A DNA stretch of 64,000 nt from Neoechinorhynchus agilis (Eukaryota > Animalia > Acanthocephala): NCBI GenBank assembly GCA_051530055.1, contig CM121342.1, positions 4,463,489 through 4,527,488 of the forward strand. The letters are read 5' to 3'. The number at the start of each line of letters is the position of its first letter. Position 1 is the stretch's first letter. Of this stretch, positions 18,821-63,640 are shown in pieces. The notes below the pieces were generated by a model that saw only the letters and a list, made by a program, of their open reading frames with translations, had not been told where the DNA came from and did not search any database. Position numbers and translations under genes: made by a program.

Positions 18821-19220
18821 TCGCCGATAACTAACAATCGACGAAATACTGATGTCCAAAGCTATTCGTACAAAGCTGATAACCGCGTATGTTTTTGAAA
18901 GTCTGATTTTATGGGCTTCCTTGAACGAAGATATCGGCTGGCTGTGTGCCTAAAGTGAAAAAGCCGAGTAAGAGATGTTTGTTTAGCCGCGCTGTTGACT
19001 CATTTTGCCCAAATCTCTCATGAAATAAACCCAATTTTACAAAAGTCCTTTTTCAAAGTGCTCTTTATTTTGGAAGTCCGTTTTGGTGCTTTCTTTAAGA
19101 TTGAATTGCTCATGTTTTTGTTTATGGCGGAAAAAATTGATGGAATTTTGGTTAAATCCGAAATTTTTATGAGGCACATCCTCGTGTGTTTTTATCAACT
19201 TTACTCCGAATTTTCAGAGA

Positions 19221-25661: not shown

Positions 25662-26186
25662 AATCTCCTTTATTATGAAATCCTTTGAGGACATTAGTAC
25701 GTTCCTTCGGCATATAATCTTTATACTCAACAATCACAGACCTTGTTTTCAACGACCTCGGCTAAGTGAAAAGTGAAACTCGTTCGATATATTTAGGACA
25801 GTCAGTGGTGAAGTTCATATTCGTGCTTTGTGCTTAAAGCGAATTCAGACGTGTTTTTTATTGTATATTTTACTGAAAATCTTTTTTTTCATATAAAAAA
25901 GTGTAGAGCACTAACAGCCAAATTGTATGAGCGTGATACGGTCAAAAATTGAACAACTCTCATGTATTATTCTTTAAAGATCGAGATTTAGGTTTCTCAT
26001 GTTTCTACTTCACTGCCAAACGGTTTCAAAGTTTTTTCTAGAGTACGAAACTCCTCGCTTATCACTCCACACACACAAAAAAATGACCCATGCATTAAAG
26101 TTGTCAATTGACTCGAAAACAAACTAGACTTCTCGTTTGGTATATTCTTAAAAGAGTTGAATACGTCTCCGTTATCGCATAAAAAG

Positions 26187-28750: not shown

Positions 28751-29804
28751 CCCTTTAGCTGATCCGTTAGAAAATGTTGAGTTTGTCATCTTCAATTCTG
28801 ATTTTGATGATAAAACATAAGGAATCGTATCGAAGGAGGAGGATTTAACGACAAACTGCCGACCCGGACGAAAGACAATCGCAAACCAATAGATCAATGG
28901 TGGAAAATAACAGCAACGATACAAGTAAATTGAGTGCTTGAACCTGAAAAGCAACAAAATCAACGTTTATTTGCCGCAACACAATATAAACGATTACGAA
29001 GAATTATGAAACTGTGCATAAAGGCCAAAGGCGTGTAATTTGCTCAAAGCATTCGAGTTCAAAACAACAACAACAACGTCAATAGTGGAACAATCAATAA
29101 AGAAGAAAAGACGATTTAATCGACGTTTAACCGTCCTTGAGCATGTCTCTTGCCCTAAAAAACTTTAAAACATCTTTATCCTCCATTGCCTCGAGGATCC
29201 AGGATTTCCTTTTTCAATTGTTGTTTCTCTGATAAAAATTAGAATATTTTCCAAGAGCAAGTCTCGCGCTCGAATATACTTTCGTTTACGGATCAACATT
29301 TTCGTTACTTTATTCGCCTTTCGTTGCATAAAAACAACAAGGATTTGTATGAAGGTTCAAAAAGAACAAAGAAATATTCTTGTTTCATTTGCCTGAAGCA
29401 CTGTTAAGACTCCACGATATAACAATTAAGATTGAAAGTCAATTGATAAGTCTCTGAATCATTAAGATCAACGAACCTTTTAAATAAGCTCTATATTGGT
29501 GCCATTATGATGATCAATAGGCTGGAAAGATCCAGAGTCAAATGGAAACAGCATTCCTTGATTTAGATGGTCATATTGATCGTCTTTAACAGACTCTTCC
29601 TTCACCGACACTAAGGTCCTTTGATGCAGATGCCTCCGGGTGAGATGAGCATCAAATGTTGAGTTTAAAATCTTGGTTTATTATTTCTTCGTAGATTTCC
29701 AGCACTGTAGAAGGACGAGCTTGAGTTATAAATACAGTTGACTTTAGGATTAATCAAACCACATCGGGACGTGACCGTTTTAGCCGGTTACATTTATTCT
29801 GTGT

Positions 29805-38088: not shown

Positions 38089-40399
38089 ATGCTGAACTCT
38101 CCGCAATGGTACAGGATTTGCGGTTCAATTGAGGCGCATTCGAGCGACATTCGATGTGTGAGGTCGTTGCCTGATGCTCAACAGTCAATCTTTTTCACTG
38201 GTGGTCGCGATGGATTGGTTTGCAAATGGGTATTGAACCCGGAAACTCTGGAATTAACGTCTGATTGCATTGTGACTGAGCATTTGAATCGTTACATAAA
38301 CGCCGTTGCGGTGATCGATGACGGACAAGAACACTCGCAGACGATTGTGGTTATTGGTGGTAACGAAAACACCGTTGAAGGATACGGTCCAAAATGTGAG
38401 AAAGTGTTCACTCTTGAAGACCAAAAGGATACGATTTGCCATTTGAACTATTCATCGGGCACAAAACTCCTCACGAGCTGTTCATACGATCAAAGTCTAT
38501 GCATTTACGACGCTACTGACCGAAGAAATCCACGATTATTGGAGAAATTCTCCTATAATGATGATTGTGTTTGGTGCAGTGAATTTGTGGGCAATGTCCT
38601 CTTAGGAGGAACGTCGAATGGATCGATAGGTATTTGGAGATTATCAGATGAACATCATATTAGTTTTGATCAATTTTTATGTTCAATTCACTCGGATTGT
38701 GTCCGGGCGATTTGTGTGTTAAATGACAAGCAAAGGGCTGCGACGGCGTCCAATGATAAAACAATCGTTATCCTTAATTTGGAATCATTGGCAGTTGTCC
38801 ATCGACTTGAAGGCCATGAGCACAATATTTTCGATCTGATTGCGATTCATGACGATAGTGGCGAAAGCCTTGTGAGTGCCGGCGAAGATCATACCTTAAG
38901 AATATGGAGTACGGAGTTGGGAAAGGAAAAGCAAATTGTTCATTTGCCGGTAACGACCTGTTGGAGTCTTGCTTTCAGTAGATCGATATTAATGGCCGCT
39001 TGCAGTGACGGTATTTTAAGGATCATAGCTGAACGAAAACCTGAATCGCCTGATCTGGATAATGAATTTTTAAGTTTTGTGATGAACGCTCCGCGATTCG
39101 ACCGTAAAGGAATGCACGATCGACCCATAGGAAGGGGCCGGTTACAAGGAGATTATCAATATGTCATGGAATTGAATAGAGACGCTCCATTGACCATTGC
39201 ACAAATCCGTAGTCAAGTTAATCAGCTTAAAGGGTTCTTGAATTCCTTTCGGTTAAAAAAGCTGATTGTGCTTGTTTCGAGACGACTACTGGTCCCGCGT
39301 TTGTATCTTTTTAAAGTACGAATGGAAAAACGATCAATGGCGTCGTGTTGGTCGGTGCGTAAAATCCAAAGAGTTGCTTGATGAGGCGTTTGTGAGTGTA
39401 GACACTGAATGTTCAGATCAATTACATAGACTGAGGTTTAAGAAAGACGAGGATCCACATGAGGTTGCTAATCGATTTTTGACCGAAAACGAACTTCCTT
39501 TAAATTGCACTTCTCAAATCGTAGAGTTTGTTCAAAAACAGTGGCCTCAACATATGACCAGTATCGTTCCTTCAATGACTTATTTGAGTTTTACATCGAT
39601 GGAAGTCTGGAGAGAGATTGAACGTCTGCGAGTGGACACAAAACAGCCCAATGTACCAACGGACGCATTCATGACCACACGTGAACTAGATCAATTGGAC
39701 AAGGATCTCGAGAAAATGCGTGATCAGATGAATTGGAAGCCACAGGACGTAAACAAGATCCTGGATCGACTCATGTTCATCTGTAAAAGGTTCCCAGTGG
39801 AATACGTTTATCCGGCAATGGACGTTATTCGATGGATTCTGGTATGTGCTCCGTTTGACGTCCGGTATTGGGACCGCTTTTGCGATCTAAATCAAACCTT
39901 AAAAGCGAGGTATTTAAATGAAAACGTTCTAAACGGGATTGTATTTTTAAGAATAATATGCAATATGTTCCTTACTCCTAACGGAATCGATATCTTTGTG
40001 GAACATGCGGATTCTATTCTTGATGTGGCATACAACATTTACGATGACTGTATCGATGATATCAGAATGATCAATACGTTCATTTCCGTGTTCTATAACT
40101 ATTGTCTGTTTCATTATAAAACGGGAAACGGAGGAAAACGACTTCGATTGTTTATTGAAAAAGTAGATATTGGTGACGTAAGGACATGGAAAATGCTTTC
40201 TATAATCCTGTACATAAAAGGATACGCAACTGTACTTCTCGCACCTTATGAATCGATCGGCCTTACCAAAGAACCACTTCTAAAATTATGCTCCTCGATT
40301 CTTGAGGCGCGAGAATGGGAGAAAGGCTTAGATGATGTGCCACATCATTTGGGCGTTTTAAAAAAGACTCTTTGTGCCGTCCTTGAGAAATTTTTATAA
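38089..40399 (+). CDS. PLAA: Phospholipase A-2-activating protein / Doa1 (WD40-PFU-PUL)
   Basis: N-terminal WD40 repeats, KYEWKNDQWRRVG, PFU-like DEDPHEVANRFLTENEL and PUL-like YPAMDVIR. The frame change is best explained by a 70-nt intron at 39212-39281. Confidence 0.8.
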
Positions 40400-40616: not shown

Positions 40617-43567
40617 TTAAAAGAATGTATTGATTCCAGAGGCGCAATCTTTTATGCCTTTTGATCGAGGTTAATTATTAATTTAAAAATTTTGATTTAT
40701 ATAAAAACATAATTTAATCTTCAAACTTAATCTCACTTACCAATAAAAGACATGAAAAATTAAAAGAATGTATTGATTTCAGAGGCGCAATCTTTTATGC
40801 CTTTTGATCGAGGTTAATTATTAATTTAAAAATTTTGATTCATATAAAAACATAATTTAATCTTCAAACTTAATCTCACTTACCAATAAAAGACATGAAA
40901 AATTAAAAGAATGTATTGATTTCAGAGGCGCAATCTTTTATGCCTTTTGATCGAGGTTAATTATTAGTTTAAAAATTTTGATTCATATAAAAACATAATT
41001 TAATCTTCAAACTTAATCTCACTTACCAATAAAAGACATGAAAAATTAAAAGAATGTATTGATTTCAGAGGCGAATCTTTTATGCCTTTTGATCGAGGTT
41101 AATTATTATTTTAAAAATTTTATTCATATAAAAACATAATTTAATCTTCAAACTTAATCTCACTTACCAATAAAAGACATGAAAAATTAAAAGAATGTAT
41201 TGATTTCAGAGGCGCAATCTTTTATGCCTTTTGATCGAGGTTAATTATTAATTTAAAAATTTTATTCATATAAAAACATAATTTAATCTTCAAACTTAAT
41301 CTCACTTACCAATAAAAGACATGAAAAATTAAAAGAATGTATTGATTTCAGAGGCGCAATCTTTTATGCCTTTTGATCGAGGTTAATTATTAGTTTAAAA
41401 ATTTTGATTCATATAAAAACATAATTTAATCTTCAAACTTAATCTCACTTACCAATAAAAGACATGAAAAATTAAAAGAATGTATTGATTTCAGAGGCGC
41501 AATCTTTTATGCCTTTTGATCGAGGTTAATTATTAATTTAAAAATTTTGATTCATATAAAAACATAATTTAATCTTCAAACTTAATCTCACTTACCAATA
41601 AAAGACATGAAAAATTAAAAGAATGTATTGATTTCAGAGGCGCAATCTTTTATGCCTTTTGATCGAGGTTAATTATTAATTTAAAAATTTTGATTCATAT
41701 AAAAACATAATTTAATCTTCAAACTTAATCTCACTTACCAATAAAAGACATGAAAAATTAAAAGAATGTATTGATTTCAGAGGCGCAATCTTTTATGCCT
41801 TTTGATCGAGGTTAATTATTAATTTAAAAATTTTGATTCATATAAAAACATAATTTAATCTTCAAACTTAATCTCACTTACCAATAAAAGACATGAAAAA
41901 TTAAAAGAATGTATTGATTTCAGAGGCGCAATCTTTTATGCCTTTTGATCGAGGTTAATTATTAATTTAAAAATTTTGATTCATATAAAAACATAATTTA
42001 ATCTTCAAACTTAATCTCACTTACCAATAAAAGACATGAAAAATTAAAAGAATGTATTGATTTCAGAGGCGCAATCTTTTATGCCTTTTGATCGAGGTTA
42101 ATTATTAATTTAAAAATTTTGATTCATATAAAAACATAATTTAATCTTCAAACTTAATCTCACTTACCAATAAAAGACATGAAAAATTAAAAGAATGTAT
42201 TGATTTCAGAGGCGCAATCTTTTATGCCTTTTGATCGAGGTTAATTATTAATTTAAAAATTTTGATTCATATAAAAACATAATTTAATCTTCAAACTTAA
42301 TCTCACTTACCAATAAAAGACATGAAAAATTAAAAGAATGTATTGATTTCAGAGGCGCAATCTTTTATGCCTTTTGATCGAGGTTAATTATTAATTTAAA
42401 AATTTTGATTCATATAAAAACATAATTTAATCTTCAAACTTAATCTCACTTACCAATAAAAGACATGAAAAATTAAAAGAATGTATTGATTTCAGAGGCG
42501 CAATCTTTTATGCCTTTTGATCGAGGTTAATTATTAATTTAAAAATTTTGATTCATATAAAAACATAATTTAATCTTCAAACTTAATCTCACTTACCAAT
42601 AAAAGACATGAAAAATTAAAAGAATGTATTGATTTCAGAGGCGCAATCTTTTATGCCTTTTGATCGAGGTTAATTATTAATTTAAAAATTTTGATTCATA
42701 TAAAAACATAATTTAATCTTCAAACTTAATCTCACTTACCAATAAAAGACATGAAAAATTAAAAGAATGTATTGATTTCAGAGGCGCAATCTTTTATACC
42801 TTTTGATCGAGGTTAATTATTAATTTAAAAATTTTGATTCATATAAAAACTAATTTAATCTTCAAACTTAATCTCACTTACCAATAAAAGACATGAAAAA
42901 TTAAAAGAATGTATTGATTTCAGAGGCGCAATCTTTTATACCTTTTGATCGAGGTTAATTATTAATTTAAAAATTTTGATTCATATAAAAACATAATTTA
43001 ATCTTCAAACTTAATCTCACTTACCAATAAAAGACATGAAAAATTAAAAGAATGTATTGATTTCAGAGGCGCAATCTTTTATACCTTTTGATCGAGGTTA
43101 ATTATTAATTTAAAAATTTTGATTTATATAAAAACATAATTTAATCTTCAAACTTAATCTCACTTACCAATAAAAGACATGAAAAATTAAAAGAATGTAT
43201 TGATTTCAGAGGCGCAATCTTTTATGCCTTTTGATCGAGGTTAATTATTAATTTAAAAATTTTGATTCATATAAAAACATAATTTAATCTTCAAACTTAA
43301 TCTCACTTACCAATAAAAGACATGAAAAATTAAAAGAATGTATTGATTTCAGAGGCGCAATCTTTTATGCCTTTTGATCGAGGTAAGTTATTAATTTAAA
43401 AATTTTGATTCGTATAAAAACATAATTTAATCTTCAAACTTAATTTCACTTACCAATAAAAGACATGAAAAATTAAAAGAATGTATTGATTTCAGAGGCG
43501 TAATCTTTTATGCCTTTTGATCGAGGTTAATTATTAATTTAAAAATTTTGATTCATATAAAAACATA
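40617..43567. repeat. Very homogeneous AT-rich tandem array, 143-bp unit, about 20.6 copies
   Basis: AAAAGAATGTATTG starts at 40619, 40762, 40905 and onward. Central copies are essentially identical. Confidence 0.98.
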
Positions 43568-43628
43568 AAAAATCCTTCCCCCTGGCTAAATGCTTAGACA
43601 GTAAAACAAATGTAATGGTTGTCGTTCT

Positions 43629-46615
43629 TCAGACGGGTACTACAACTTTGTCTGCAACGATCTCAAGCAGCTCTGGGCACTTTTTCTTCCAATTCTTCAC
43701 ATCTTTACTAACGGTGCACCATTCGATTCCATGCCGCGGTTCGGCTTTAACACACGCTTCCTTCACTCGGGCCTGGCTCTGTTCATCACCATGAATAATC
43801 TCGAATTTAAGCATGTGAGCATAGGCGTCCCCGAAATCACTGTTTAACCGGATACATTTGTCGAACCAATCTCTAGCTTTATCGATAGAAAGTTTGCTCC
43901 AGAAAAAGCGAGCAAGTGCAAGTAACACAACAGGATCGTCTTCGCAGTACTTCATTGCGTCCACGCATTTCGTTTTTCGTTTACTTTCAGTTTCCATAAA
44001 AATGGCTTCTGCTCGTAAAATGCCAGAATGTGGACAATCTTGAATAGCTCTGGCCAAAAGACTGTCAGCGTAGTGACGATTTCCTGAACGGATTTCCATA
44101 CGAACAGACTCGAGCCACAGTTCCGGACACTTGGGATTCGAAATACGAGCCCGTTCAAGACTTGCTCTCGCTCGAATCACTTTTCCGGTGTAACGCTCGT
44201 CATTTCTGGCATTTAAACGAAATGCCCTCAAATGTGTGTGAGAAGGGAGTTTGTTCGATTAAGATGAAATCTCATTGAAGATGTGACCCACAGCCCATTA
44301 GAGGATATTCCATTCCTTAGAGAATATAAAGAGGTACACAATGAGGACAATGTTTAATTCCGGACGCAAACGCTTGCCCGGCATCGGTGAATTTCTCCAT
44401 TATTTGCAAAATTTGCCCTTTCATCATCCATAACTTTGCGAATAAGGGAAATTTAGACAATCCTTGGTCGACGTGTTCCAATGCTCGCTCAAGCTCTCCT
44501 AAACACCACTCCAATTTGGCGGCCTTCATAAAAACTCGACCAGTCGGTGCACTTTTACCCGCTTTTTCAAGTAATTTCCTCGCTCGTTCATGCTCATGGT
44601 TTTCGCTTTCGAGTTTTACAGCAGCAAGCCATATTTCCTCTGAATTAGGATTTGCTGAAAATGCGTTAGCCAATACCTTACGTGCGTTCGTTACATCATT
44701 GGCGATCCATTTCGATTTAGCCAGCATTAGCCAAAGGACTTCTGAGTCAGAGCAATGAGTGACGGCTTGGGCGAGCAAACACTCGAGAGCTTCTCTATCG
44801 TTCTGAGAACGTTCAAAATAAGCAGCCTCAAGCCAAAGATCGAGTCGTTTAGGGTGCTTAGCTAAAGCTAACGCGAAAATTCGACGAGCACATTCTGGAG
44901 CTCCTTCATTGGCACATGTATTCGCATCCTCAAGCCACGTCTCAACCTCGTCCTCATCACTTTCTATTCCAATGGTTGCTACGACGTTAATAATCGATCT
45001 CGCAGTCTGAAGACATTCTGTCTTTTCTACATCCATCGCGTCTTGTAGCCATTGATCTCGATTAATCACAACCATATTGGCTTTCAAGGACGCAACCGCT
45101 CGGTCAATTATCTTATCGACCATCTTAAGATTCCCGTGAGCTTCTTCTAATTTTGCTGCCATGAACCATATTTGCCGATCTGTAGGGATATTCTCACGAG
45201 CTCTATTAAGAACAGATTTGGCCTTCTCGTAGGTTTCTAGTCTCGCCAAAGCCAACCAAAGGTCAACGGATGTTGGGCAGCAAGTTACAGCTCGTGAAAG
45301 CATTATCCGAGCGTCGGATTCGTTCTCAAGTTCAACCGCAGTTTTCCAAAGTTTAACTGAATCAGGAACCGATTCCAGTGCACGGCGAAGAACGCGCTTT
45401 TTTGACTTTAGATCCATTTCTAAATCTGTAGCTTTAGATCAGGCATCGGCAACAAATATCCCATTGACAGAAAAGAGAGAGAAAATGGTTGTTCAATTGT
45501 AAACATAAAACTGAAATCAAAGTGTTGCCGACTCCCTGGGAATTAATCCACAACCTTACAGATTGTGGAAGATTCTGAACGGCCTCTACTATAATCTTCT
45601 TACTTGCTTCCTTCGGCATTAGTCGAATTGCTTCCATCCAAACGTCCTCACTTTTCGGGCACATTTCAGTGCCTTTCATTATGAGAACTCGACTAGCCTG
45701 AACCTTACCTACAACCTCCTCTAACCTAGCACTTGCAATCCAAGCTGGTCCATGTGAAGGATTCGTCTCCCTGACTGACTTTAGAAGCAATCTTGCCTTC
45801 TTAACATCACTTATATCTCCACTGTACTGAGGAAGCATTGACTGAAGGTTAGTTAGGTACCCTTTCGGATCAACAACTGTTTGACCAGTCACTGAATCAC
45901 TGACTTGATTAAGCTTCATGTCCATTAACGTATTCCGAGCTTCTCCGATTCTCTTCATATCGATGTCATCAATAGAAGTCCTAGTTCCATCAATTGGATG
46001 AACGACAGGACGAGTATTGTGCATAATCAACAAAGTATCAGGGACGGGCGTGAACTTCTCAGCTCGGGGATTTCGTTGTCGTTTATCTCGACTATCTCCC
46101 ACCTCAGGAATACTCAACCATTCATCATAACTAACATTGGCCAGTTTTCGTTTTAAATCACTTAACTGTTGTTGAATCTTTGGACGCTCCTGTCGGAATT
46201 TCTCTACTTCTTCCCTGAACCTACGTTCACGACGATCTTTCCGCTGTTCATCCATCCGACGATCGATCCCATCGTACACTGAATCAGCCTCCTCGTCGTC
46301 CTTTTCGTAAGGATCGTTTTTAAATAGACTACCGCCGTAACCGAACTCTTCGTCAAAATTAGCATCGTTCAAGTCTTCGTCGTCATCGTCAATTGGAGGC
46401 GGTTCGTCACCTGACGGACCCGGTGGTCGCTTCCTAAGCGTAAAAGCATGCCGTTCATCAGTAACATCACCTGATTCGCGAGCTGGACCAATATCCGAAC
46501 GAGTTGTAAACCCAGTGGCACCACGACCTAAGCCAGGAACGTATCCGAGCGGTGCAGGCATTCCAATGAACGCCTTTTTCTTTTTATTCATCAAATACGC
46601 CGATGTTGTCGACAT
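43629..46615 (-). CDS. PRPF6: Pre-mRNA processing factor 6 (U5-102K), three exons split by two non-canonical introns
   Basis: [41 protein letters not shown] repeats and C-terminal [18 protein letters not shown] at 46615; introns at about 45434-45542 and about 44213-44318. Confidence 0.95.
44213..44318 (-). other. Non-canonical hairpin intron 2 of PRPF6 (106 nt; AA..AA, AG..AA or TA..TA depending on register)
   Basis: Interrupts PLYIL|(Y/N)[16 protein letters not shown] and contains stops. There is no GT or GC donor between PLYIL and the in-frame TAA. Stem GGAATATCCTCTAATG / CATTTGAGGGCATTTC. Confidence 0.8.
45434..45542 (-). other. Non-canonical hairpin intron 1 of PRPF6 (109 nt; TT..AA, flanked by a TAA direct repeat)
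   Basis: Removal gives [26 protein letters not shown]. Arms CAGGGAGTCGGCAACA / TGTTGCCGATGCCTG. Confidence 0.75.
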
Positions 46616-47109
46616 ATCTAAAATGATTTCTGAAACAAAAAATGGAAAAAAATTCAGCCGTCTATATATTAAGGAATACTGAAACATTTTGTTGCTTTTA
46701 AGTTGCTTGTCGAAATACTTGAAAGTTAAGCAACACCGATTAAACCAGAGTCATTTTAAAAAATTCCATTGTTTTGTATTCTTTTTTCCAACAATCTCTC
46801 GAGGGTTCATAAGCGACCTAAACAACAACAAAAACTAACAACAAACCGAATATAATCGTCAATAATGCAAAAATGTTAAACATTTACAAAAATTCAAAAA
46901 TGGGAACATCTACATCTTTCATTAACAAAAAGGAGTTAACCTTAACACAAAATCGTATTTCAACCAAATCTAATAAAAAAACCCTAAAGCACATAGACCC
47001 TAAGCATAAAAGATGATCAAACCAAAAATTATGATATTTCCAATGATCAATGGATGAATTTTTTAAGTAAAATCAAAACGATTCTTCCGTGAACGAATGA
47101 ACGAATCAC

Positions 47110-50100
47110 ACTGTTCTTCTGTGTCATATTGAACTCTCCAGTAAGATTATTTTAGTCTACAAAAAATGCGAACTGATGTGGTATTAATGTTATATGACGC
47201 AATGGACGCGCGATGAAATTATTTAACACGGATCGATAAACTGCGTTTTTGTACACTTAAAGTTTTGCGTTTTCTATTAAGTCAGTTTTGTGTGGAGATC
47301 TTGGTCGTTCAAGCGGTTCCATTAGTTGCGACAAAGTATTTGTTTGATAGGATCAATTGAGGATTTTTAAACGAGAATCAAGGAGTAAAATTCACACATT
47401 TCTTCTGTGTCCTATTGAACTCTCCAGTAAGATTATTTTAGTCTACAAAAAATGCGAACTAATGTGGTATTAATGTTATATGACGCAATGGACGCGCGAT
47501 GAAATTATTTAACACGGATCGATAAACTGCGTTTTTGTACACTTAAAGTTTTGCGTTTTCTATTAAGTCAGTTTTGTGTGGAGATCTTGGTCGTTCAAGC
47601 GGTTCCATTAGTGGCGACAAAGTAATTATTTGATAGGACCAATTGAGGATTTTTAAACGAGAATCAAGGAGTAAAATTCACACATTTCTTCTGTGTCCTA
47701 TTGAACTCTCCAGTAAGATTATTTTTGTCTACAAAAAATGCGAACTAATGTGGTATTAATGTTATATGACGCAATGGACGCGCGATGAAATTATTTAACA
47801 CGGATCGATAAACTGCGTTTTTGTACACTTAAAGTTTTGCGTTTTCTATTAAGTCAGTTTTGTGTGGAGACCTTGGTCGTTCAAGCGGTTCCATTAGTGG
47901 CGACAAAGTAATTATTTGATAGGATCAATTGAGGATTTATAAACGAGAATGAAGGAGTAAAATTCACCACATTTCTTCTGTGTCCTATTGAACTCTGCAG
48001 TAAGATTATTTTAGTCTACAAAAATGCGAACTAATGTGGTATTAATGTTATATGACGCAATGGACGCGCGATGAAATTATTAAACACGGATCGATAAACT
48101 GCGTTTTTGACACTTAGAGTTTTGCGTTTTCTATTAAGTCAGTTTTGTGTAGAGACCTTGGCCGTTCAAGCGGTTCCATTGGCATCGACAAAGTATTTAT
48201 TTGATAGTATTAATTGAGGATTTATAAACGAGAATCATGGGGTAAAATTCACACATTTCTTCTGTGTCATATTGAACTCTCCAGTAAGATTATTTTAGTC
48301 TACAAAAAAAGCCAACTAATGTGGTATTAATGTTATATGACGCAATGGACGCGCGATGAAATTATTTAACACGGATCGACAAACTGCGTTTTTGTACACT
48401 TATAGTTTTGCGTTTTCCATTAAGTCAGTTTTGTGTAGAGACCTTGGTCGTTCAAGCGGTTCCATTAGTGGCGACAAAGTATCTATTTGATAGGATCAAT
48501 TGAGGATTTTTAAACGAGAATGAAGGAGTAAAATTCACACATTTCTTCTGTGTCATATTGAACTCTCCAGTAAGATTATTTTAGTCTACAAAAAATGCGA
48601 ACTGATGTGGTATTAATGTTATATGACGCAATGGACGCGCGATGAAATTATTTAACACGGATCGATAAACTGCGTTTTTGACACTTTTAGTTTTCTATGT
48701 TTTCTATTATGTCAGTTTTGTGTGGAGATCTTGTCGTTCAAGCGTCTCATTAGTGGCGACAAAGTATTTGTTTGATAGGAATAATTGAGGATTTTTAAAC
48801 GAGAATCAAGGAGTAAAATTCACACATTTCTTCTGTGTCCTATTGAACTCTCCAGTAAGATTATTTTAGTCTACAAAAAATGAACTAATGTGGTATTAAT
48901 GTTATATGACGCAATGGACGCGCGATGAAATTATTTAACACGGATCGATAAACTGCGTTTTTGACACTTTTAGTTTTGCGTTTTCTATTATGTCAGTTTT
49001 GTGTGGAGACCTTGGTCGTTCAAGCGGTTCCATTAGTGGCGACAAAGTATTTGTTTGATAGGATCAATTGAGGATTTATAAACGAGAATGAAGGAGTAAA
49101 ATTCACACATTTCTTCTGTGTCATATTGAACTCTCCAGTAAGATTATTTTAGTCTACAAAAAATGCGAACTAATGTGTATTAATGTTATAAGACGCAATG
49201 GACGCGCGATGAAATTATTTAACACGGATCGATAAACTGCGTTTTTGTACACTTATAGTTTTGCGTTTTCTATTAAGTCAGTTTTGTGTGGAGACCTTGG
49301 TCGTTCAAGCGGTTCCATTAGTTGCGACAAAGTATTTGTTTGATAGGATCAATTGAGGATTTTTAAACGAAAATCAAGGAGTAAAATTCACACATATCTT
49401 CTGTGTCATATTGAACTCTCCAGTAAGATTATTTTAGTCTACAAAAAATGCGAACTGATGTGGTATTAATGTTATATGACGCAATGGACGCGCGATGAAA
49501 TTATTTAACACGGATCGATAAACTGCGTTTTTGACACTTTTAGTTTTGCGTTTTCTATTATGTCAGTTTTGTGTGGAGACCTTGGTCGTTCAAGCGGTTC
49601 CATTAGTGGCGACAAAGTAATTATTTGATAGGATCAATTGAGGATTTTTAAACGAGAATCAAGGAGTAAAATTCACACATTTCTTCTGTGTCCTATTGAA
49701 CTCTCCAGTAAGATTATTTTAGTCTACAAAAAATGCGAACTAATGTGGTATAAAGGTTATAAGACGCAATGGACGCGCGATGAAATTGTTTAACACGGAT
49801 TGATAAACTGCGTTTTTGACACTTATAGTTTTGCGTTTTCTATTAAGTCAGTTTTGTGTGGAGATCTTGGTCGTTCAAGCGGTTCCATTAGTTGCGACAA
49901 AGTATTTGTTTGATAGGATCAATTGAGTGATTTATAAACGAGAATGAAGGAGTAAAATTCACACGATTCTTCTGTGTCATATTGAACTCTCCAGTAAGAT
50001 TATTTTAGTCTACAAAAAATCCGAACTAATGTGGTATTAATGTTATATGACGCAATGGACGCGCGATGAAATTATTTAACACGGATCGATAAACTGCGTT

Positions 50101-51442
50101 TTTGTACACTTATAGTTTTGCGTTTTCTATTAAGTCAGTTTTGTGTGTAGACCTTGGTCGTTCAAGCGGTTCCATTAGTTGCGACAAAGTATTTGTTTGA
50201 TAGGATCAATTGAGGATTTTTAAACGAGAATCAAGGAGTAAAATTCACACGATTCTTCTGTGTCCTATTGAACTCTGCAGTAAGATTATTTTAGTCTACG
50301 AAAAGTGCGAACTAATGTAGTATTAATGTTTTATGACGCAATGGACGCGCGATGAAATTATTAAACACGGATCGATAAACTGCGTTTTTGACACTTAGAG
50401 TTTTGCGTTTTCTATTAAGTCAGTTTTGTGTGGAGACCTTGGTCGTTCATGCGGTTCCATTAGTGGCGACAAAGTATTTGTTTGATAGGATCAATTGAGG
50501 ATTTTTAAACGAGAATCAAGGAGTAAAATTCACACATTTCTTCTGTGTCATATTGAACTCTCCAGTAAGATTATTTTAGTCTACAAAAAATGCGAACTAA
50601 TGTGGTATTAATGTTATATGACGCAATGGACGCGCGATGAAATTATTTAACACGGATCGATAAACTGCGTTTTTGACACTTTTAGTTATGCGTTTTCTAT
50701 TAAGTCAGTTTTGTGTGGAGATCTTGGTCGTTCAAGCGGTTCCATTAGTTGCGACAAAGTATTTGTTTGATAGGATCAATTGAGGATTTTTAAACGAGAA
50801 TCAAGGAGTAAAATTCACACGATTCTTCTGTGTCATATTTAACTCTCCAGTAAGATTATTTTAGTCTACAAAAAATGCGAACTGATGTGGTATTAATGTT
50901 ATAAGACGCAATGGACGCGCGATGAAATTATTTAACACGGATCGATAAACTGCGTTTTTGACACTTTTAGTTTTGCGTTTTCTATTATGTCAGTTTTGTG
51001 TGGAGACCTTGGTCGTTCAAGCGGTTCCATTAGTGGCGACAAAGTATTTGTTTGATAGGATCAATTGAGGATTTTTAAACGAGAATCATGGGGTAAAATT
51101 CACACATTTCTTCTGTGTCATATTGAACTCTCCAGTAAGATTATTTTAGTCTACAAAAAATGCGAACTAATGTGGTATTAATATTATATGACGCGATGGA
51201 CGCGCGATTAAATTATTTAACACGGATCGATAAACTGCGTTTTTGTACACTTAAAGTTTTGCGTTTTCTATTATGTCAGTTTTGTGTGGAAACCTTGGTC
51301 GTTCAAGCGGTTCCATTAGTGGCGACAAAGTATTTGTTTGATAGGATCAATTGAGGATTTTTAAACGAGAATGAAGGTGTAAAATTCACACATTTCTTCT
51401 GTGTCCTATTGAACTCTCCAGTAAGATTATTTTAGTCTACGA
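47110..51442. repeat. Tandem array, unit about 286 bp, about 15 copies
   Basis: ATTGAACTCTCCAGTAAG at 47128, 47414, 47700 and onward. Copies differ by scattered SNPs and indels. Confidence 0.98.
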
Positions 51443-51478
51443 AAAGATCAAAAATTTTTTTAAACGAAAGAGATGGAT

Positions 51479-52698
51479 TTATTTGTTGAAGTCCTTACAA
51501 CAGTTTTCGAATTCCTCTTGCTTCGCTAATACCTGTTGTACAAGCATCGGCTTAGGGTTCAATGAAATTAACTCTTCCCAGTACGCATCTCCGCCTTCGT
51601 CATTGGGTAGTAAAGCTGCTAAATTATAAGCTACATTTACGTCGGAGCCGTCTAATTGATTTCCTTTTCTCAAAACCGCCAATACTTTCTCTAATGAATA
51701 TTCATCGTCCAGTAATGCCATACAAACGGCTTCGTTGTTCAATAAAACGGAAGTTTGGCCATACCTTTCCGAAAGGTCTCGATAAAGTCCCAATGCCCTT
51801 CGTATGGAAGGTGGATCTTGAGATGTTAAGAGGTTTAGTCCCAATGCCATTTGGCTAAGACTTGCCTCGCTGTCGATTGTTTGCATACGTTTCACTGTTC
51901 TAGCAACGAGATCAGTTAGGTTCAAAATTTGTGCCAAATGAATTCTGTTGTATAAAAGTTCCAGGGTCAATGTTTCCGATGAAGACGAGTCTTTGGCAAT
52001 GTACCGGTCCACACAAACCAGGGCTTTCATAGTCTCTTGTTTTGAACAAAGTATCTCTATGCAAACTAACAACAGGTTTGGATCAATGTCGTCCGATAGT
52101 AATGGAGAAGCATCCGCTTCACCGGTTTTTGCATATCTCGACGGTTTCTGGAAGCGCTGCTCAAGAGCTTTTATAAGGATTTGATCGTTTTCCCTGTGGT
52201 TAATCGCATAAAAAACTAGGGAAATTTGTTTGCCTCTATACTCGAGCCAACCAAATCAACGAAATTTAAGGAAAATAAAATCGGAATTTGTAAAAGATTA
52301 AGTCTAGACGAACAATGCTTGAATGAGATTTTCTTTTCAAAATAAGTCAAAAATGTGATTTCGAATGAAACACTTACAAACCTTGAGGAAATGTAGGAAT
52401 TATTCGAGACGTGTTCGGGAGGGTTGCAAAACTCTAAAAAAAATCTTTCCCCCGAAGATAATAAACTAAGATATAAACAGAACCCGTCAAAGTATTCGAT
52501 TAGAACATGACTCACTTGGGGATCAATGTCATGTTTCAGCGTATTAATTGCCATTGTGATCTTCTTTTGTCTAAGATAAGCTCTGTAGAGGAACAGTTGA
52601 CGATCGGTGGTTGGCTGTCTAATGGATAAGAGCAGCGAAACGCATTTGTGGTAGTCGCCAAGGTAGTAAAATGAACGGACCGCGTCCATATCAGACAT
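51479..52698 (-). CDS. COPE: Coatomer subunit epsilon, two exons
   Basis: VRSFYYLGDYHKC, RQLFLYRAYLRQKK, TLSQMA-like ASLSQMALG and LLNNEAVC match COPE. An intron of about 269 nt lies at 52216-52484 (in frame only as GG..AG). Confidence 0.8.
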
Positions 52699-53710: not shown

Positions 53711-54116
53711 TCCTCCAGGAATAGGAAAGACGACCTGTATTTTGTGTTTAGCTCATGAGATGCTCGGCATTCATTACCATACAGCCGTTTTGGAGCTTAG
53801 TGCCTCGAACGAGCGTGGAATTGAAGTAGTTCGTGGGAAGATCAAATCTTTTGCTCAACGGAAAGTCACACTGCCTCCGAGGGCGCATAAAATCATCATT
53901 CTCGATGAGGCTGACAGGTTCAATTTTGATTTTCAATTTGTTTTCGAAATCGCTGGTTTTTAGTATGACTGAGGCGGCACAGCAGGCGCTTCGGCGGACA
54001 ATGGAGGTCTACGCGACTACTACGCGATTCGCTTTGGCTTGTAATAATTCCGAAAAGATCATTGAAGCAATCCAATCTCGATGCGCTATTATTCGATTTG
54101 GTCGTCTTCCTGACGA
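53711..54116 (+). pseudogene. Partial inverted duplicate of RFC2 (most of exon 2, intron 2, part of exon 3) fused to a fragment of the secreted-repeat gene
   Basis: Near-identical to the reverse complement of about 55853-56258, retains the 46-nt intron, lacks exon 1 and switches at 54117 to GACCCGGATTC. Confidence 0.88.
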
Positions 54117-55109
54117 GACCCGGATTCAAAAGCGGATAAAAATTACACTTATATCAAACAAATCGTTGCCGGTGATGATGACTACAAACAATTCGCTCAC
54201 ATGGAGAAACGGGACAACAAATCCAAGGCTGGAAACGTAAGCATGACATTATACACAAGCACAATGAGTTTTCGTACGAAAAGTCAAAGTTTGATCGTTA
54301 TCTTAACAGGTACACCTGTCGGTGTTTTTAACTGAGAACGGCAGATCTCAGTTAGTTTCGATGGCTGTATCCATCGATAGTTTCAATAAATAGTTTTTTG
54401 GCATTCATTCGTAAAATACTTTAGAACGGGTATTTCGTGTTCTAAAATTCAATTTTGAAGCGATCGTTTTGAACACACACAAAGCCGTCCCAAATAAACG
54501 AAATCTTAAACTTAGGTCCCGATCCTTTAAAATTTGATCAGAATATAAACGGCTCCCGGCATTTGCTCTCATCTTTTAACGAATTTTTCTTAGCTTCACC
54601 GACAATTAATCTACACGAGGCGGCACCACGTACAAATCACGAAATATTAGGCGGATCTGGAAGAATCGTCGCTGATTTCGTCATATTTCCCAAAGTTTGA
54701 AGTGAACGCAAATGGTCAAAAGTAGCGTTCTTTTTCTGTACTTTACGTGTGTGATTCACGGTGTTGTGGTCATTTTTTACGTCGTCCGCCCGCGCTCGCG
54801 ATGATTTGTTTATTTTCGACTGTCGTCCGTCAGAAATAGCGCCTTATCACTCTGTAAATTAGTTCGATATTTCTCGATCGATGGCAATTCATTTTTTTTC
54901 CATTTCGATCAACACAACTTAAATTTCGCGATTCAGGTAAATCTAGAAAAATCTGATCAAATTCTTTGTTTATTATTTTCCTCCAGAGAATCAGAACCTT
55001 TTTAGCATCTCTCAACGCCTTTTTTGCGCGCTTTCGGAATTATTCCAAGAAACTTCGTTGAGAAATTTCCGTTAGAAAAATGTGAGTTTGCTTTTAATAA
55101 GAAATCAGC
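54117..55109 (+). repeat. Inverted partner of 20367-21366
   Basis: Near-identical sequence by eye. Confidence 0.9.
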
Positions 55110-55335: not shown

Positions 55336-56531
55336 TTATAAAGTACTAATTTTTTTATCTATATTTGACATGAGGCAGAATTTGCCCAGTAAAGCCATGA
55401 TTTGTAGCCAGCTTCCTATTCCGAGTTTAGCAACGTCAATGTTCAGCAGGCAAACTTCTTTGATCATCTCAATTCTTAACATTTCAGCTTCTTCATCTGT
55501 CTTTTTATATTGAGAAAAATCGAACACCTTCAGGACGCGAATGAGAGTGGACAGAATATCTTGAGCGGTATATCCACGCTTCCACATATAATCGCCGATT
55601 TCAATGGCCTTATCGAGTTCCTGTTCAAGACATCTCGATAGAATTTCCTTGGCCATCACTGGATTTGGTTCATCGCACACCTTAAAAACGTTATCTTCAT
55701 CGATAAAATTAAACCCAAACGCCGTTGCTTGTAGATTATTTACTGCCTTTCGAAGATCTCCTTCGGCCGAGAATGCGATTGCCTTCAGACCCGATTGAGT
55801 ATATTTCAAATTTTCAGCAAAAGCGATCTGTTCAATCCGTTTAATGATTGAATCGTCAGGAAGACGACCAAATCGAATAATAGCGCATCGAGATTGGATT
55901 GCTTCAATGATCTTTTCGGAATTATTACAAGCCAAAGCGAATCGCGTAGTAGTCGCGTAGACCTCCATTGTCCGCCGAAGCGCCTGCTGTGCCGCCTCAG
56001 TCATACTAAAAACCAGCGATTTCAAAAACAAATTGAAAATCGAAATTAAACCTGTCAGCCTCATCGAGAATGATGATTTTATGCGCCCTCGGAGGCAGTG
56101 TGACTTTCCGTTGAGCAAAAGATTTGATCTTCCCACGAACTACTTCAATTCCACGCTCGTTCGAGGCATTAAGCTCCAAAACGGCTGTATGGTAATGAAT
56201 GCCGAGCATCTCATGAGCTAAACACAAAATACAGGTCGTCTTTCCTATTCCTGGAGGACCCTAGAATCTAAAAGTTAACACAAGATTTCGATAGAAACAA
56301 TTTTACCGAGAACAGTAGATGGGGCATATTTCCTGAAGATACAAAGTCTTTTAATCTTGAGACAATCTCCGAATTCCCGACTATATCACTCAGTAAATTA
56401 GGTCGGTATTTCTCGATCCAGGGCAATTCATCTTTTTTTCCATTTCGACCAACACAATGATCATCAATTAACATCATTTCATCGCGTTCGCCATCCGTAG
56501 TACTTACCTTCATTTCTTGGAATAATTCCAT
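55336..56531 (-). CDS. RFC2: Replication factor C subunit 2, three exons
   Basis: [14 protein letters not shown]|[32 protein letters not shown]|[14 protein letters not shown]. Canonical 46-nt introns at 56261-56306 and 56006-56051. Confidence 0.93.
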
Positions 56532-57510: not shown

Positions 57511-57967
57511 ACATAAGTCTGGTTCTATCCATTTGTTCGTTCGAATGGATGTGTATTCTCAATGGCGAATTGTAAGCTTTGAAAAAACTTGCAAACAATG
57601 TTGAGAAGGATGCTGAGGCCCTGAAAATTCGCAATGAAGATTTCAGTAATAAAGCTCGAGTGTGTAACAATTCGCCATTGAGAATAAGTCCGGTTGTTCA
57701 ACGGGAGCGAATACTGTATATGTTCATTCAACCGTTACACCAGGACGGCTCCCGAGTGATCCAGAAAAGCAGTGGTGGTGTGAATAATCTAAATTTCAAG
57801 GATCTTCTATAAAAATACGGAAACAAAATATCCCAACTTCCTTTTTGTTGCTATTTCCGAATAATTTTGTATCCGATGTGAATTTCGAGGTTCATAACCA
57901 AATATTCTGAAAGTGTTAAGAGCGAGTGACCATCGAATAGTTCTCTATTTCTTAGTTCCTTTTTTAG

Positions 57968-58701: not shown

Positions 58702-59091
58702 TCAACAGCACTTTAGACAACATCCAGGTTGATAAGTTGGACAATTTTGGTTGTGCTGGCAATAAGGAGGAGCTGTGTATCCATTACATCGAGCGTCCGA
58801 GCAGATAACATTTATAACTGGCGGTTCATCGATAACACACGGACAAGGTCCGCAAGTTTGTAAACATGGACGAGGACATTGAGTAATGCATTTCGGAGGC
58901 AGTGCACAGCATCGATCTTCACTCTGAAAACATCCTCTATTCTTAATGATATTCACCTTTTCGGTCTCAGAATTTACGTTGAAATTATCCAGTTCACATG
59001 AACAAGTCTTTTTTGCGGGTGCATTCGTCGACAATGCGGCGACGTTCACTGTCGAATAGATAATCGAGAAAAGTAAAAGGAAAGTGAACAT
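58702..59091 (-). CDS. Secreted cysteine-rich small protein, copy 2
   Basis: Same 129-aa protein as 22219-22608. The two differences I spotted are synonymous. Confidence 0.7.
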   Translation of the reverse strand: MFTFLLLFSIIYSTVNVAALSTNAPAKKTCSCELDNFNVNSETEKVNIIKNRGCFQSEDRCCALPPKCITQCPRPCLQTCGPCPCVIDEPPVINVICSDARCNGYTAPPYCQHNQNCPTYQPGCCLKCC

Positions 59092-59741
59092 TTTGTCAGC
59101 TAAGAACGGGATTTCGCCTTCATTTCTACTAACGAAATTTACACAACAAAGGATAAAACTTGAACACATCGCAAGTTTTGAAACCACTTTTTTCGTGTGA
59201 AAACTTTAACAAAAATCAGAGACTTAAAAACACGAAACGAGATCGGGTGGTAAAATTTAAAATAATAATCAGTGAACAGCGCTGAACTGAAAATAAGTGA
59301 CCAACCGAATTCGGACAGTATCGAATCGATAATACTATTTATGACCAATTATTCGAGTGTGCAACTTCGCGGCTTTCTTTTCTCGTTACCGAAAACATTG
59401 CGGACAAGTCCCAAAATCGCTTCCTAAAAGCACTTTCCTCATTATGCCGATTTGTTACTTGCATTCCTCTGTCGCCGATGCACGCCTAAATGACGACAAG
59501 AGAAACTTACGGTTTCATATCGTTCCATATAAGAAATCATCGGTCGTGTCCATCTCGAAACAAACTCTATATTTTGATAATAAAATTCGTTGCCGGTCTT
59601 GGACCAATTCTTCGTCCCGTGTCCTAGGCCCACAGAAATCAACATTTACAATAGAAGATTTATTCTTCGTTTTTATAAAAGTTGCACGAATCCATTTTAG
59701 ACTTTGTAAAACACGGAGATAACGCGTTTCATTTCCACTGA

Positions 59742-60992
59742 TGCCGTCATCGCCTCGTAGAGTTTGAGAGATAATCTCGAACGGCTAAAATACGTATCGG
59801 AATTTATCATCAAAAATCCTTCGTCGCATATCCATCCTAAATCCGTTAAACTGATTTTTCCGGACTTTATCGGACACCCTTCCTCAATCCGGACTACTTT
59901 AACCTTCTTATCGAGAATTCTGATTAGGCCGTCATCTCCTGGATGAGTTTGAGAGATAATCTCGAACGGCTAAAATACGTATCGGAATTTATCATCAAAA
60001 ATCCTTTGTCGCATATCTATCCTAAATCCGTTAAACTGATTTTTCCGGACTTTACCGGACACCCTTCCTCAATCCGGACTACTTTAACCGTCTTATCGAG
60101 AATTCTAATTAGGCCGTCATCTCCTGGTGGAGTTTGAGAGATAATCTCGAACGGCTAAAATACGTATCGGAATTTATCATCAAAAATCCTTCGTCGCATA
60201 TCCATCCTAAATCCGTTAAACTGATTTTTCCGGACTTTATCGGACACCCTTCCTCAATCCGAACTACTTTAACCGTCTTATCGAGAATTCTAATTAGGCC
60301 GTCATCTCCTGGTGGAGTTTGAGAGATAATCTCGAACGGCTAAAATACGTATCGGAATTTATCATCAAAAATCCTTCGTCGCATATCCATCCTAAATCCG
60401 TTAAACTGATTTTTCCGGACTTTATCGGACACCCTTCCTCAATCCGAACTACTTTAACCGTCTTATCGAGAATTCTAATTAGGCCATCATCTCCTGGTGG
60501 AGTTTGAGAGATAATCTCGAACGGCTAAAATACGTATCGGAATTTATCATCAAAAATCCTTCGTCGCATATCCATCCTAAATCCGTTAAACTGATTTTTC
60601 CGGACTTTATCAAACACCCTTCCTCAATCCGAACTACTTTAACCGTCTTATCGAGAATTCTAATTAGGCCATCATCTCCTGGTGGAGTTTGAGAGATAAT
60701 CTCGAACGGCTAAAATACGTATCGGAATTTATCATCAAAAATCCTTCGTCGCATATCCATTCTAAATCCGTTAAACTGATTTTTCCGGACTTTATCGGAC
60801 ACCCTTCCTCAATCCGAACTACTTTAACCGTCTTATCGAGAATTCTAATTAGGCCGTCATCTCCTGGTGGAGTTTGAGAGATAATCTCGAGCGGCTAAAA
60901 TACGTATCGGAATTTATCATCAAAAATCCTTCGTCGCATATCCATCCTAAATCCGTTAAACTGATTTTTCCGGACTTTATCAAACACCCTTC
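59742..60992. repeat. Tandem array, 185-bp unit, about 6.7 copies
   Basis: GTTTGAGAGATAATCTCG at 59762, 59947, 60132 and onward. Confidence 0.97.
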
Positions 60993-61055
60993 TTCATTCC
61001 TTTGCGAATTTTAATTCGCGATTCTGAGTTTTTGGATTTTAGACCCTTGAAAAAC

Positions 61056-63126: not shown

Positions 63127-63640
63127 TAATTTTTTCGATTAAAGGAGTTGTTCATTTATAGATGTGTTCTTTGATGATGAGCAGAAGAAGAATAAATATT
63201 GATTTATTAATTCTCAATATTTGGTCCGCCTCGTCCGACTTTTGGGAATTAATAAATCAATATTTATTCTTCTTCTGCTCACCATCAAAGAACACATCTA
63301 TAAATAATCAACTTCTTTAATCGAAAAAATTATTTGTATTCTTTGGTGATGAGAATGAGAATAAATTTTGATTTATTAATTCTCAATATTTGGTCCGCCT
63401 CGTCCGACTTTTGGGAATTAATAAATCAATATTTATTCTTCTGCTCACCATCAAAGAACACATCTATAAATGAACAACTTCTTTAATCGAAAAAATTATT
63501 TGTATTCTTTGGTGATGAGAATGAGAATAAATTTTGATCTATTAATTCTCAAAAGTCGGAGACCAAATATTTAGAATTAATAAATCAATATTTATTCTTC
63601 TTCTGCTCATCATCAAAGAACACAAATGATTTTTTCGATT
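63127..63640. repeat. Foldback/palindromic element (206 bp, arms about 87 bp) followed by two rearranged tandem copies
   Basis: 63127-63213 is an imperfect inverted repeat of 63247-63332. Later copies at 63333-63497 and 63498-63640. Confidence 0.9.

Follow-up and report, generated by a model that had tools for sequence, protein, structure and literature searches.

Two hairpin-closed interruptions without canonical splice borders in the PRPF6 gene of the acanthocephalan Neoechinorhynchus agilis: candidates for non-canonical introns

We have analyzed a stretch of 64,000 nucleotides (nt) of the acanthocephalan Neoechinorhynchus agilis, referred to below as the window. It begins at about position 4,463,489 of CM121342.1, a chromosome of 16.4 Mb (assembly GCA_051530055.1). 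The minus strand of the window carries a single gene for PRPF6, a core protein of the spliceosome, running from about 46591 to 43629. Open reading frames (ORFs) and three-frame translation divide the gene into three open blocks, separated by two interruptions that we call I1 and I2. All positions are those of the window.

45545 to 46591, minus strand: PRPF6 coding block 1, from MNKKKK to PQSVRLWI, with the PRP1_N domain and the first HAT repeats; an open frame that aligns with 11 homologues without an internal stop
45436 to 45544, minus strand: interruption I1, 109 nt, between blocks 1 and 2; no canonical solution leaves the HAT motif intact
44320 to 45435, minus strand: PRPF6 coding block 2, ending HCVPLYIL; open frame, aligned with the homologues
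44211 to 44319, minus strand: interruption I2, with a possible removal of 106 nt (44319 to 44214, 44318 to 44213 or 44317 to 44212) or 109 nt (44319 to 44211 or 44320 to 44212)
44317 to 44319, minus strand: in-frame TAA stop directly 3' of PLYIL, reading cct ctt tat att ctc TAA
43629 to 44210, minus strand: PRPF6 coding block 3, ending VVPV and then a stop; open frame, aligned with the homologues

Over their whole length the 914 PRPF6 codons can be aligned with 11 orthologues (60-65% identity), and no further stop or frameshift is present. The best PRPF6 match is that of the rotifer Brachionus calyciflorus, with 64% identity over the full length. An in-frame ATG upstream, at about 46615, is an alternative start for block 1. 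The remaining 2.7 kb of coding sequence is undamaged, and the 195 codons of block 3, downstream of the TAA, are fully open and conserved, so that an end of translation at PLYIL is not expected. Elsewhere in the window (27373-28966, minus strand) adjoining ORFs carry in-frame stops and frameshifts. We guess this to be a decayed retroelement; it exemplifies unselected coding sequence in this genome, in contrast to the intact blocks of PRPF6.

In the public gene calls PRPF6 is split into three fragments of 156, 231 and 382 amino acids (window 43629-46754). The last 156 residues of block 3 form a gene call of their own. The C-terminal 229 residues of block 2 are found in a 231-residue NCBI entry, 'hypothetical protein ACOME3_005610 [Neoechinorhynchus agilis]', a model that opens with an invented 24-nt intron (MD/TARS...). 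An exact-product look-up of block 2 gave no match. Among the N. agilis proteins that match the junction region there was no second PRPF6, only two flanking fragments from the same locus. Neither the full-length query nor a 132-residue junction query against 5.8 billion proteins found a spliced N. agilis PRPF6, returning only two genomic fragments. Among 1.84 billion representative proteins the matches to block 3 were at about 51% identity or less, and the best of a metagenome scan was likewise at most 51%, with no close relatives for an analysis of covariation.

The published genome of N. agilis comprises 46.2 Mb in three chromosomes. It was derived from a pool of 50 worms by a MaSuRCA hybrid assembly of Nanopore and Illumina reads, with haplotypes purged, and was annotated with BRAKER (PMC12690905). 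Neither this paper nor the companion study of gene loss (PMC12256650) contains the words intron or splicing.

At I2 the reading frame is indeed broken. The segment has stops in all three frames, and the frame of block 3, which differs from that of block 2, reopens at 44213/44210 as (N)ARNDE. Joining the two requires the removal of a number of nucleotides equal to 1 modulo 3; the stretch from 44318 to 44213, 106 nt, is one such length. From the cct codon at 44333 to the TAA stop there is neither a GT nor a GC. We enumerated every in-frame GT-AG, GC-AG, AT-AC, AT-AG and GT-AC combination around the break, and none of them leaves PLYIL and ARNDE both in place. Upstream of the stop, the closest GT donor is at 44337 (tgt/GTACCT); it costs VPLYIL, and its stop-free in-frame AG acceptors at 44196 and 44130 lose NARNDE or more besides.

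Two lengths of removal join the frames with PLYIL and ARNDE intact. Taking out 109 nt, in a TA..AT register (44319-44211) or a CT..AA register (44320-44212, with the leucine read as ctt), gives PLYIL-ARNDE with no junction residue. This is gapless against all 11 homologues, preserves the W/Y-x6-E spacing of the other HAT repeats, and matches the length of I1. Taking out 106 nt gives PLYIL-Y-ARNDE (AA..AA or AG..AA registers) or PLYIL-N-ARNDE, a one-residue insertion with respect to all 11 homologues, in which the tyrosine would match the LYA of Brachionus. On the sequence, a length of 109 nt appears at least as likely as 106 nt. The predicted junctions are as follows.

I2 junction, 109 nt removed: ...CTTTATATTCTC/GCCAGAAATGACGAG
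I2 junction, 106 nt removed, with Y: ...ATATTCTCTA/TGCCAGAAATG
I2 junction, 106 nt removed, with N: ...ATATTCTC/AATGCCAGAAATG

An earlier, sequence-only reading of this locus had described I2 as a 106-nt PRPF6 intron lacking any GT or GC donor between the conserved motif and the stop. The alignment with Brachionus confirms the gene, the stop at 44319-44317 and the reopened frame confirm the break, and the lack of a donor is evident in the sequence. The assertion that canonical solutions delete conserved HAT/TPR residues is upheld by the full list of combinations, and the second intact PRPF6 named there as a refutation was not found among proteins matching the junction region. The proposed 106 nt does join the frames, but as a length it is not established, since 109 nt fits the family at least as well. 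Nor can the junction codon be held to be TAT or AAT, since the 109-nt removal has no junction residue at all.

The borders of I2 also bear on how it could have arisen. TAA occurs at both ends, 104 nt apart; this is 2 modulo 3, and therefore out of frame. There is no direct repeat of at least 2 nt at a spacing of 103, 106 or 109 nt. In the absence of a frame-restoring repeat, I2 is not a fresh insertion that could be healed by precise excision. The minus strand at 44298-44327 also contains an 11-nt direct repeat, ATATTCTCTAA (the exon end and the stop) and ATATCCTCTAA, spaced 19 nt apart. The second copy, ATATCCTCTAA, belongs to the 5' arm of I2 described below, contains ATATCCTC, a motif close to the U12 donor consensus, and would also read Y-I-L-stop.

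Interruption I1 is flanked by a direct repeat of TAA (45545-45543 and 45436-45434). Its four registers lead to an identical mRNA, reading tgg att aaa gct, i.e., W I K A. Removal of I1 restores SVRLWI/..., corresponding to SVKLWI/KAADLESELKAKKKVF (SVKLWI/KAADLESELK) in Brachionus; the predicted I1 junction is ...GGTTGTGGATTAAAGCTACAGATTTAG. At the 5' border there is no stop, and the frame stays open for 35 codons. The strong GTAAGG found 15 nt upstream of I1 (45559) encodes the Val-Arg of the conserved SVRLW; its use with an AG at 45406 loses 15 residues. A GC-AG option (GC at 45528, AG at 45432) replaces K by NSQGV and breaks the W-x6-E spacing. Each element is about 106-109 nt long and of ordinary base composition, without GT/GC...AG or AT...AC borders. 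Judged by sequence, I1 looks like an insertion with a 3-nt duplication, and I2 does not.

Both interruptions are closed by base pairing between their ends.

44296 to 44315, minus strand: 5' arm of I2, GAAUGGAAUAUCCUCUAAUG, including the U12-like motif ATATCCTC at 44308-44301
44215 to 44234, minus strand: 3' arm of I2, CAUUUGAGGGCAUUUCGUUU
44237 to 44292, minus strand: inner stem of I2 in the minimum-free-energy fold, UGUGGG (44292-44287) with CUCACA (44242-44237), enclosing a pyrimidine-rich loop CUCCCUUCUCAC
45523 to 45538, minus strand: 5' arm of I1, CAGG..GUCGGCAACA, forming 4 + 10 base pairs with 45440-45454
45440 to 45454, minus strand: 3' arm of I1, UGUUGCCGAU.CCUG

The I2 arms GGAATATCCTCTAATG and CATTTGAGGGCATTTC form 12 Watson-Crick and two G.U pairs with two mismatches, exactly the 14 of 16 given in the sequence-only reading. 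With 44315-44296 set against 44234-44215 the helix reaches about 18-19 pairs, with five mismatches in 19. The terminal helix of I1 (CAGG..GUCGGCAACA with UGUUGCCGAU.CCUG) is 14 bp long. In both elements the outermost 4-6 nt are unpaired, i.e., not inverted repeats, and the helices place the exon borders within a few nucleotides of each other.

We compared these helices with chance at positions set by the frame breaks, calculating the energy of the duplex between the 30 nt at one end and the 30 nt at the other and comparing it with 5000 random windows of the same length and with shuffled sequences. The end duplex of I2, at -18.6 kcal/mol, is matched by 1.2% of the random windows and 0.56% of the shuffles. 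That of I1, at -23.4 kcal/mol, is matched by 0.14% and 0.1% respectively. The pairing of the element ends exceeds chance. The duplex is also stronger in the sense than in the antisense strand (-22.4 versus -14.4 kcal/mol for I2, -23.5 versus -20.8 kcal/mol for I1), because there are five G.U pairs against one A.C mismatch; the I2 helix has four G.U pairs, in the sense strand only. This strand bias leans weakly toward an RNA helix, and is not significant alone. The sequence-only reading regarded I2 as the strongest single case. I1, which it did not mention, is the stronger for the hairpin and has the clean TAA/TAA repeat.

What is found at these sites in other animals? The PRPF6 gene of Brachionus is intronless (2763 nt, i.e., 920 codons and a stop). 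That of Adineta vaga has nine introns, none of which is located at the I1 or I2 site. Since the rotifer orthologues lack an intron at either position, I1 and I2 are gains in the acanthocephalan line, and they probably began as insertions into an otherwise intronless gene. Transposon-derived non-canonical introns arise as gains in other lineages too (PMC11282704). With regard to target duplication the two elements differ: I1 has TAA/TAA at a spacing of 109 nt and the frame restored; I2, with TAA/TAA 104 nt apart, is out of frame. Traits of introners or MITEs (miniature transposable elements with inverted repeats) were not found, in that the inverted repeats do not reach the tips and there are no related copies in the 64 kb. 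I2 cannot be repaired at its repeats, whether as a transposon footprint, as an eliminated sequence, or as an element plus one duplication. Taken with the intact gene and with the lack of a second copy among proteins matching the junction region, this is most simply read as a gene that has been kept functional while carrying I2, which would then be removed from the message.

The window also contains ordinary introns and a component of the ordinary machinery. A replication factor C (RFC) gene has two clean GT-AG introns of 46 nt and 26% GC without a terminal helix, as against 106-109 nt and 39% GC for I1 and I2. The pyrimidine runs of I1 and I2 are located in the loop, 25-50 nt from the 3' border, and do not adjoin the border as in ordinary introns. 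A U1 small nuclear RNA (snRNA) gene is found at 9896-10060 on the plus strand (128 bits), with a canonical 5' end AUACUUACCUG. Given GT-AG introns and a canonical U1 snRNA, this genome needs PRPF6. Pairing of U1 with I2 was considered and set aside, as it involves only UAAG and one further base, with nothing comparable at I1.

A screen of the window for pairs of ORFs gave mostly spurious pairs. A change of frame in the PLAA gene (39104-39281, plus strand) is accommodated by a candidate 178-nt intron, GTAAAG...TTTCGAG. It is closed by a terminal helix of -14.9 kcal/mol (outer 30 nt), and its 5' end GTAAAGGAATG resembles that of I2 (cTAAGGAATGG). We dropped PLAA as a third non-canonical case, since the canonical GT-AG solution exists. 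Mapping to PDB and Pfam and a homologue search, which returned generic WD40 proteins only, gave no confirmation of the junction by homology. A GT...AG element closed by a helix nevertheless indicates that the same architecture occurs with canonical borders. In the epsilon-COP gene a break at 52194-52515 (minus strand) has in-frame GT-AG options that use weak donors such as GTTCTG. Its GTGAGT is probably coding (V-S), since in alignment with COPE chains of known structure (PDB) PQVSHV corresponds to PELQAV.

The sequence itself shows the break, the lack of canonical borders, the terminal helices, the intact remainder of the gene and, by comparison, relatives without introns at these positions. 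We infer that the two segments are removed, and that this occurs at the level of RNA. On balance we think it somewhat more likely than not, from the DNA sequence, that I1 and I2 are lineage-specific, hairpin-closed, non-canonical introns. Several considerations lead us to this. The gene is otherwise intact, PRPF6 is needed, and no second copy was seen among the matches to the junction region. Both interruptions have significantly paired ends at the positions of the frame breaks. Furthermore, PRPF6 has stayed intact while carrying an I2 whose arms have already diverged. The stronger pairing on the transcribed strand, the lack of introns at these sites in the rotifers, the helix-closed PLAA element with GT...AG borders and the higher BUSCO completeness of the transcriptome, given below, are in keeping with it. 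I2 would be transcribed and then excised from the pre-mRNA with enough precision for the frame to be restored as PLYIL-(Y)-ARNDE. The common recognizable feature would be the terminal helix rather than the border dinucleotides, and the helix would probably help to define or juxtapose the sites of cutting. The cuts might be made, as in Fritillaria, by the ordinary U2 spliceosome if it is tolerant of unusual borders, or else by a distinct route guided by structure, such as has been proposed for euglenids.

A number of observations weigh against this interpretation. The folding energy of the complete segments is ordinary (z = -0.35 for I2 and -1.38 for I1), and a hairpin scan of the window with positions left free gave 267 hairpins at -17 kcal/mol or better, making such a screen too unspecific. 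We could derive neither a border motif common to the two elements nor a constant distance between helix and border that fits both in frame, and no single rule based on the helix or on UAA/UAAA motifs placed both in frame. When I1, I2 and the PLAA intron were aligned locally in pairs, the alignments did not surpass those of shuffled sequences, and blastn with a word size of 7 found no further copies of I1 or I2 in the 64 kb. The non-canonical cases found number only two, both in PRPF6. Finally, the BRAKER annotation, which included RNA-seq evidence, left the pieces of PRPF6 unjoined; the BRAKER pipeline normally rejects non-canonical junctions.

One rival explanation is that two small inserts of foldback or transposon-like character have disabled the assembled allele or copy of PRPF6, and that the working one was left unassembled or unannotated. 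I1 does look like a clean insertion, in that removal of the element with one TAA repeat gives the exact frame; neither site holds an intron in the relatives; 50 worms were pooled for the DNA, and haplotypes were purged (PMC12690905); and a MITE-like element with perfect 20-nt inverted ends is present nearby (57554-57686). We nevertheless regard this as unlikely. An essential gene present as a single copy would not bear two null insertions in its majority haplotype. The junction region matched no other N. agilis protein, neither element recurs in the window, and no direct repeat allows I2 to be healed by excision, yet the 2.7 kb of coding sequence is otherwise undamaged. Alternatively the inserts could be restricted to the germline and cut from the DNA of the expressing cells, like the TA-bounded internal eliminated sequences (IESs) of ciliates. 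The TAA/TAA boundary of I1, where one retained copy restores the gene, would suit such programmed or somatic elimination, as would ends resembling inverted repeats and DNA prepared from whole worms. I2 does not fit. With 104 nt between its TAA/TA repeats, an excision leaving a single copy generates ctc TAA atg, with a stop and the wrong frame; a ciliate-type IES was rejected for I2 on this ground. Moreover, in both elements the inverted repeats do not extend to the outermost 4-6 nt, and the G.U pairs point weakly to a helix of RNA rather than DNA. We also know of no report of DNA elimination in Syndermata, which counts against an explanation that we consider quite improbable.

Small indels or mis-joins in the MaSuRCA hybrid assembly could have produced the break or concealed a GT or AG. 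The assembly is based on Nanopore and Illumina reads (PMC12690905), and the 5' end of I2, cTAAGG, is the donor consensus GTAAGG lacking its first G. Addition of a G does create a phase-0 GT donor, but no AG in a phase compatible with it is available as acceptor. An insert of about 109 nt, unique in sequence and with stops in all three frames, is not an indel, there are two independent cases with the same architecture, and the reported k-mer completeness against the Illumina reads is 96%, so that we judge such an error improbable, if a shade less so than DNA elimination. We rate on a par with that elimination the prospect that ordinary processes suffice, through cryptic canonical splicing, a protein that ends at PLYIL, or three separate polypeptides. 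In-frame options do exist (GT at 44337 to AG at 44196 for I2; GTAAGG at 45559 to AG at 45406, or GC at 45528 to AG at 45432, for I1), and block 2 begins near an ATG (45417). However, every option removes or displaces the HAT W/Y-x6-E core, whose spacing is invariant in all 11 homologues, and for this reason we rejected U2-type GT-AG or GC-AG splicing, each in-frame stop-free solution having this defect for both elements. The acceptors lack pyrimidine tracts, and block 3 has no suitable start codon, yet is conserved over its 195 codons. Ribosomal bypass, in which the ribosome would hop from CUC-UAA to a downstream codon as in gene 60 of phage T4, seems to us extremely remote. A stop directly follows the take-off codon, and a leucine codon UUA precedes AAU GCC in the landing frame. 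Against this, the gap of 103 nt is twice the 50 nt of the T4 bypass, the codons for take-off and landing are not the same, the 5' border of I1 lacks a stop, and we know of no precedent in a nuclear gene of an animal, a further point against it. Three other processes were considered and rejected. Frameshifting or readthrough by the ribosome is excluded by the stops in all three frames. A-to-I editing to create GU and AG could convert only the 3' AA to AI, with no 5' AU in a usable phase. Rfam scans for ribozymes (hammerhead and others), small nucleolar RNA and microRNA gave only a weak match to Y_RNA. That match covers I2 at full length (44218-44308 with RF00019), including GUGGGU...CUCCCUUCUCAC and the lower and upper stems; a Y RNA was rejected, as its score of 20.2 bits falls short of the gathering score of 38 and, with E = 0.41 in 1.45 kb, lacks significance on the scale of the whole window.

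How do the putative hairpin-closed introns compare with non-canonical introns of other organisms? The nonconventional introns of the euglenids Euglena gracilis and E. agilis similarly lack GT-AG, have ends that pair a few nucleotides inside the borders, have no 3' pyrimidine tract and short border repeats, and coexist with conventional introns (PMC11282704, PMC12501133). I1 shares with them CAGG/CCTG as the outermost pairs of the helix. The Euglena code is 5'-N3-CDG...CH'G-N5-6/R, with a strict 5' spacer of 3 nt (PMC12501133). I2 departs from this code, having no CDG near its 5' end and no C in its first 13 nt; I1 does have CAG/CTG, but with a 5' spacer of 4-7 nt in the registers compatible with the frame it misses by at least 1 nt. 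The host here is moreover an animal, and the helices, at 14-19 bp, are much longer. Euglenid introns of this type leave as full-length circles, at a stage later than conventional splicing.

The AG/AC and AG/AT introns of Fritillaria borealis provide an animal example, in which a U2 spliceosome with a conserved U1 snRNA removes introns that are not GT-AG; they go back to insertions of elements that have inverted ends and target duplications, and their positions are specific to lineages (PMC13326754, PMC11282704). The likeness of I2 to these AG/AN introns, suggested by the sequence-only reading, does not survive comparison with their rule, by which YAY precedes the 5' AG and YAY forms the last three bases of the intron (PMC13326754). 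In its AG..AA register I2 has CTA before and AAA at the end. Fritillaria is a fritillariid larvacean with a duplicated U2AF and only about 5% canonical introns, whereas our host is an acanthocephalan and the ordinary introns in its window are GT-AG. With the non-canonical introns of Amoebophrya and with introner- or MITE-derived introns, I1 shares the character of a short insert with inverted ends, removed with one copy of a 3-5 nt duplication and having ambiguous borders. Those introns form multi-copy families with conserved ends, whereas here no copy or shared terminus was found in 64 kb, and I2 breaks the rule of an element plus one duplication.

For membership of the U12 class we looked for /ATATCCTT exactly at the exon border, together with an AC or AG in a compatible frame that is preceded, at 10-15 nt, by a TCCTTAAC branch site. 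The U12 donor consensus is ATATCCTT, from which the motif ATATCCTC of I2 differs by one base, and I2 also has a branch-like CTTAAT 10 nt upstream of an AC, as in U12 AT-AC introns. We rejected this class for I2, because the donor ATATCCTC (44308) is 11 nt downstream of the in-frame stop, inside a helix arm, and the AC acceptors at 44249 and 44253 give segments of 60 and 56 nt that are out of frame. With the fold checked by eye, removal by an endonuclease and ligase at a bulge-helix-bulge, for which 3-nt bulges 4 bp apart at the two borders are needed, was rejected, since a central helix of only 2 bp is possible, as were IRE1 loops, there being no CNGNNGN at either border.

Satellite arrays flank PRPF6 on both sides (40617-43568 and 47106-51445). 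One, built of a 143-bp unit (20.7 copies, 99% identity), comes to an end 60 nt away from the stop codon, and the other consists of 15.2 copies of a 285-bp unit. More arrays are present elsewhere in the window.

11131 to 13032: satellite array, 305-bp unit
16244 to 18821: satellite array, 177-181-bp unit
24248 to 25666: satellite array, 329-bp unit
59743 to 61000: satellite array, 185-bp unit
63163 to 63624: satellite array

The MITE-like element at 57554-57686 is intergenic, its perfect 20-nt inverted ends being TATTCTCAATGGCGAATTGT and its complement; a related end, ACAATTCGCCACTGAGAA, lies near 56690. There are two inverted segmental duplications, one of part of the RFC small-subunit gene (53833-54240, plus strand, and 55729-56136, minus strand) and one of a gene for a cysteine-rich secreted protein (22180-22608, plus strand, and 58702-59187, minus strand). 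The neighboring genes in the window include an actin-like ORF.

Beyond this gene, the broader proposal that acanthocephalans possess a second, structure-defined means of intron removal, by which hairpin-closed inserts without GT-AG borders are cut from pre-mRNAs including that of a core spliceosome protein, is one that we offer tentatively, as a possibility suggested by the two elements. The searchable literature yielded no account of introns of this kind for Acanthocephala. To our knowledge introns that are routinely not GT-AG are confined to very few lineages, namely euglenids, one dinoflagellate genus and fritillariid tunicates, and a case in a spiralian animal would be a new and independent example. 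The odd introns would be located within PRPF6 itself, in a genome that has normal GT-AG introns and a canonical U1 snRNA within the same 64 kb.

If true, such introns would be common enough across the 46-Mb genome of N. agilis to break gene prediction, and part of the reported 'massive loss of conserved genes' in these parasites would be an artefact of annotation. The published BUSCO completeness of the transcriptome exceeds that of the genome, with 54.9% versus 47.1% for the metazoan set and 71.0% versus 58.4% for the eukaryotic set (PMC12690905). This fits genes that are whole as mRNA yet unreadable in the DNA, and does not prove it. The low BUSCO has been attributed mainly to gene loss in two papers (PMC12690905, PMC12256650). 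If hairpin introns are frequent these estimates of loss would need to be rechecked, and some of the gene loss reported for N. agilis may be failed gene prediction.

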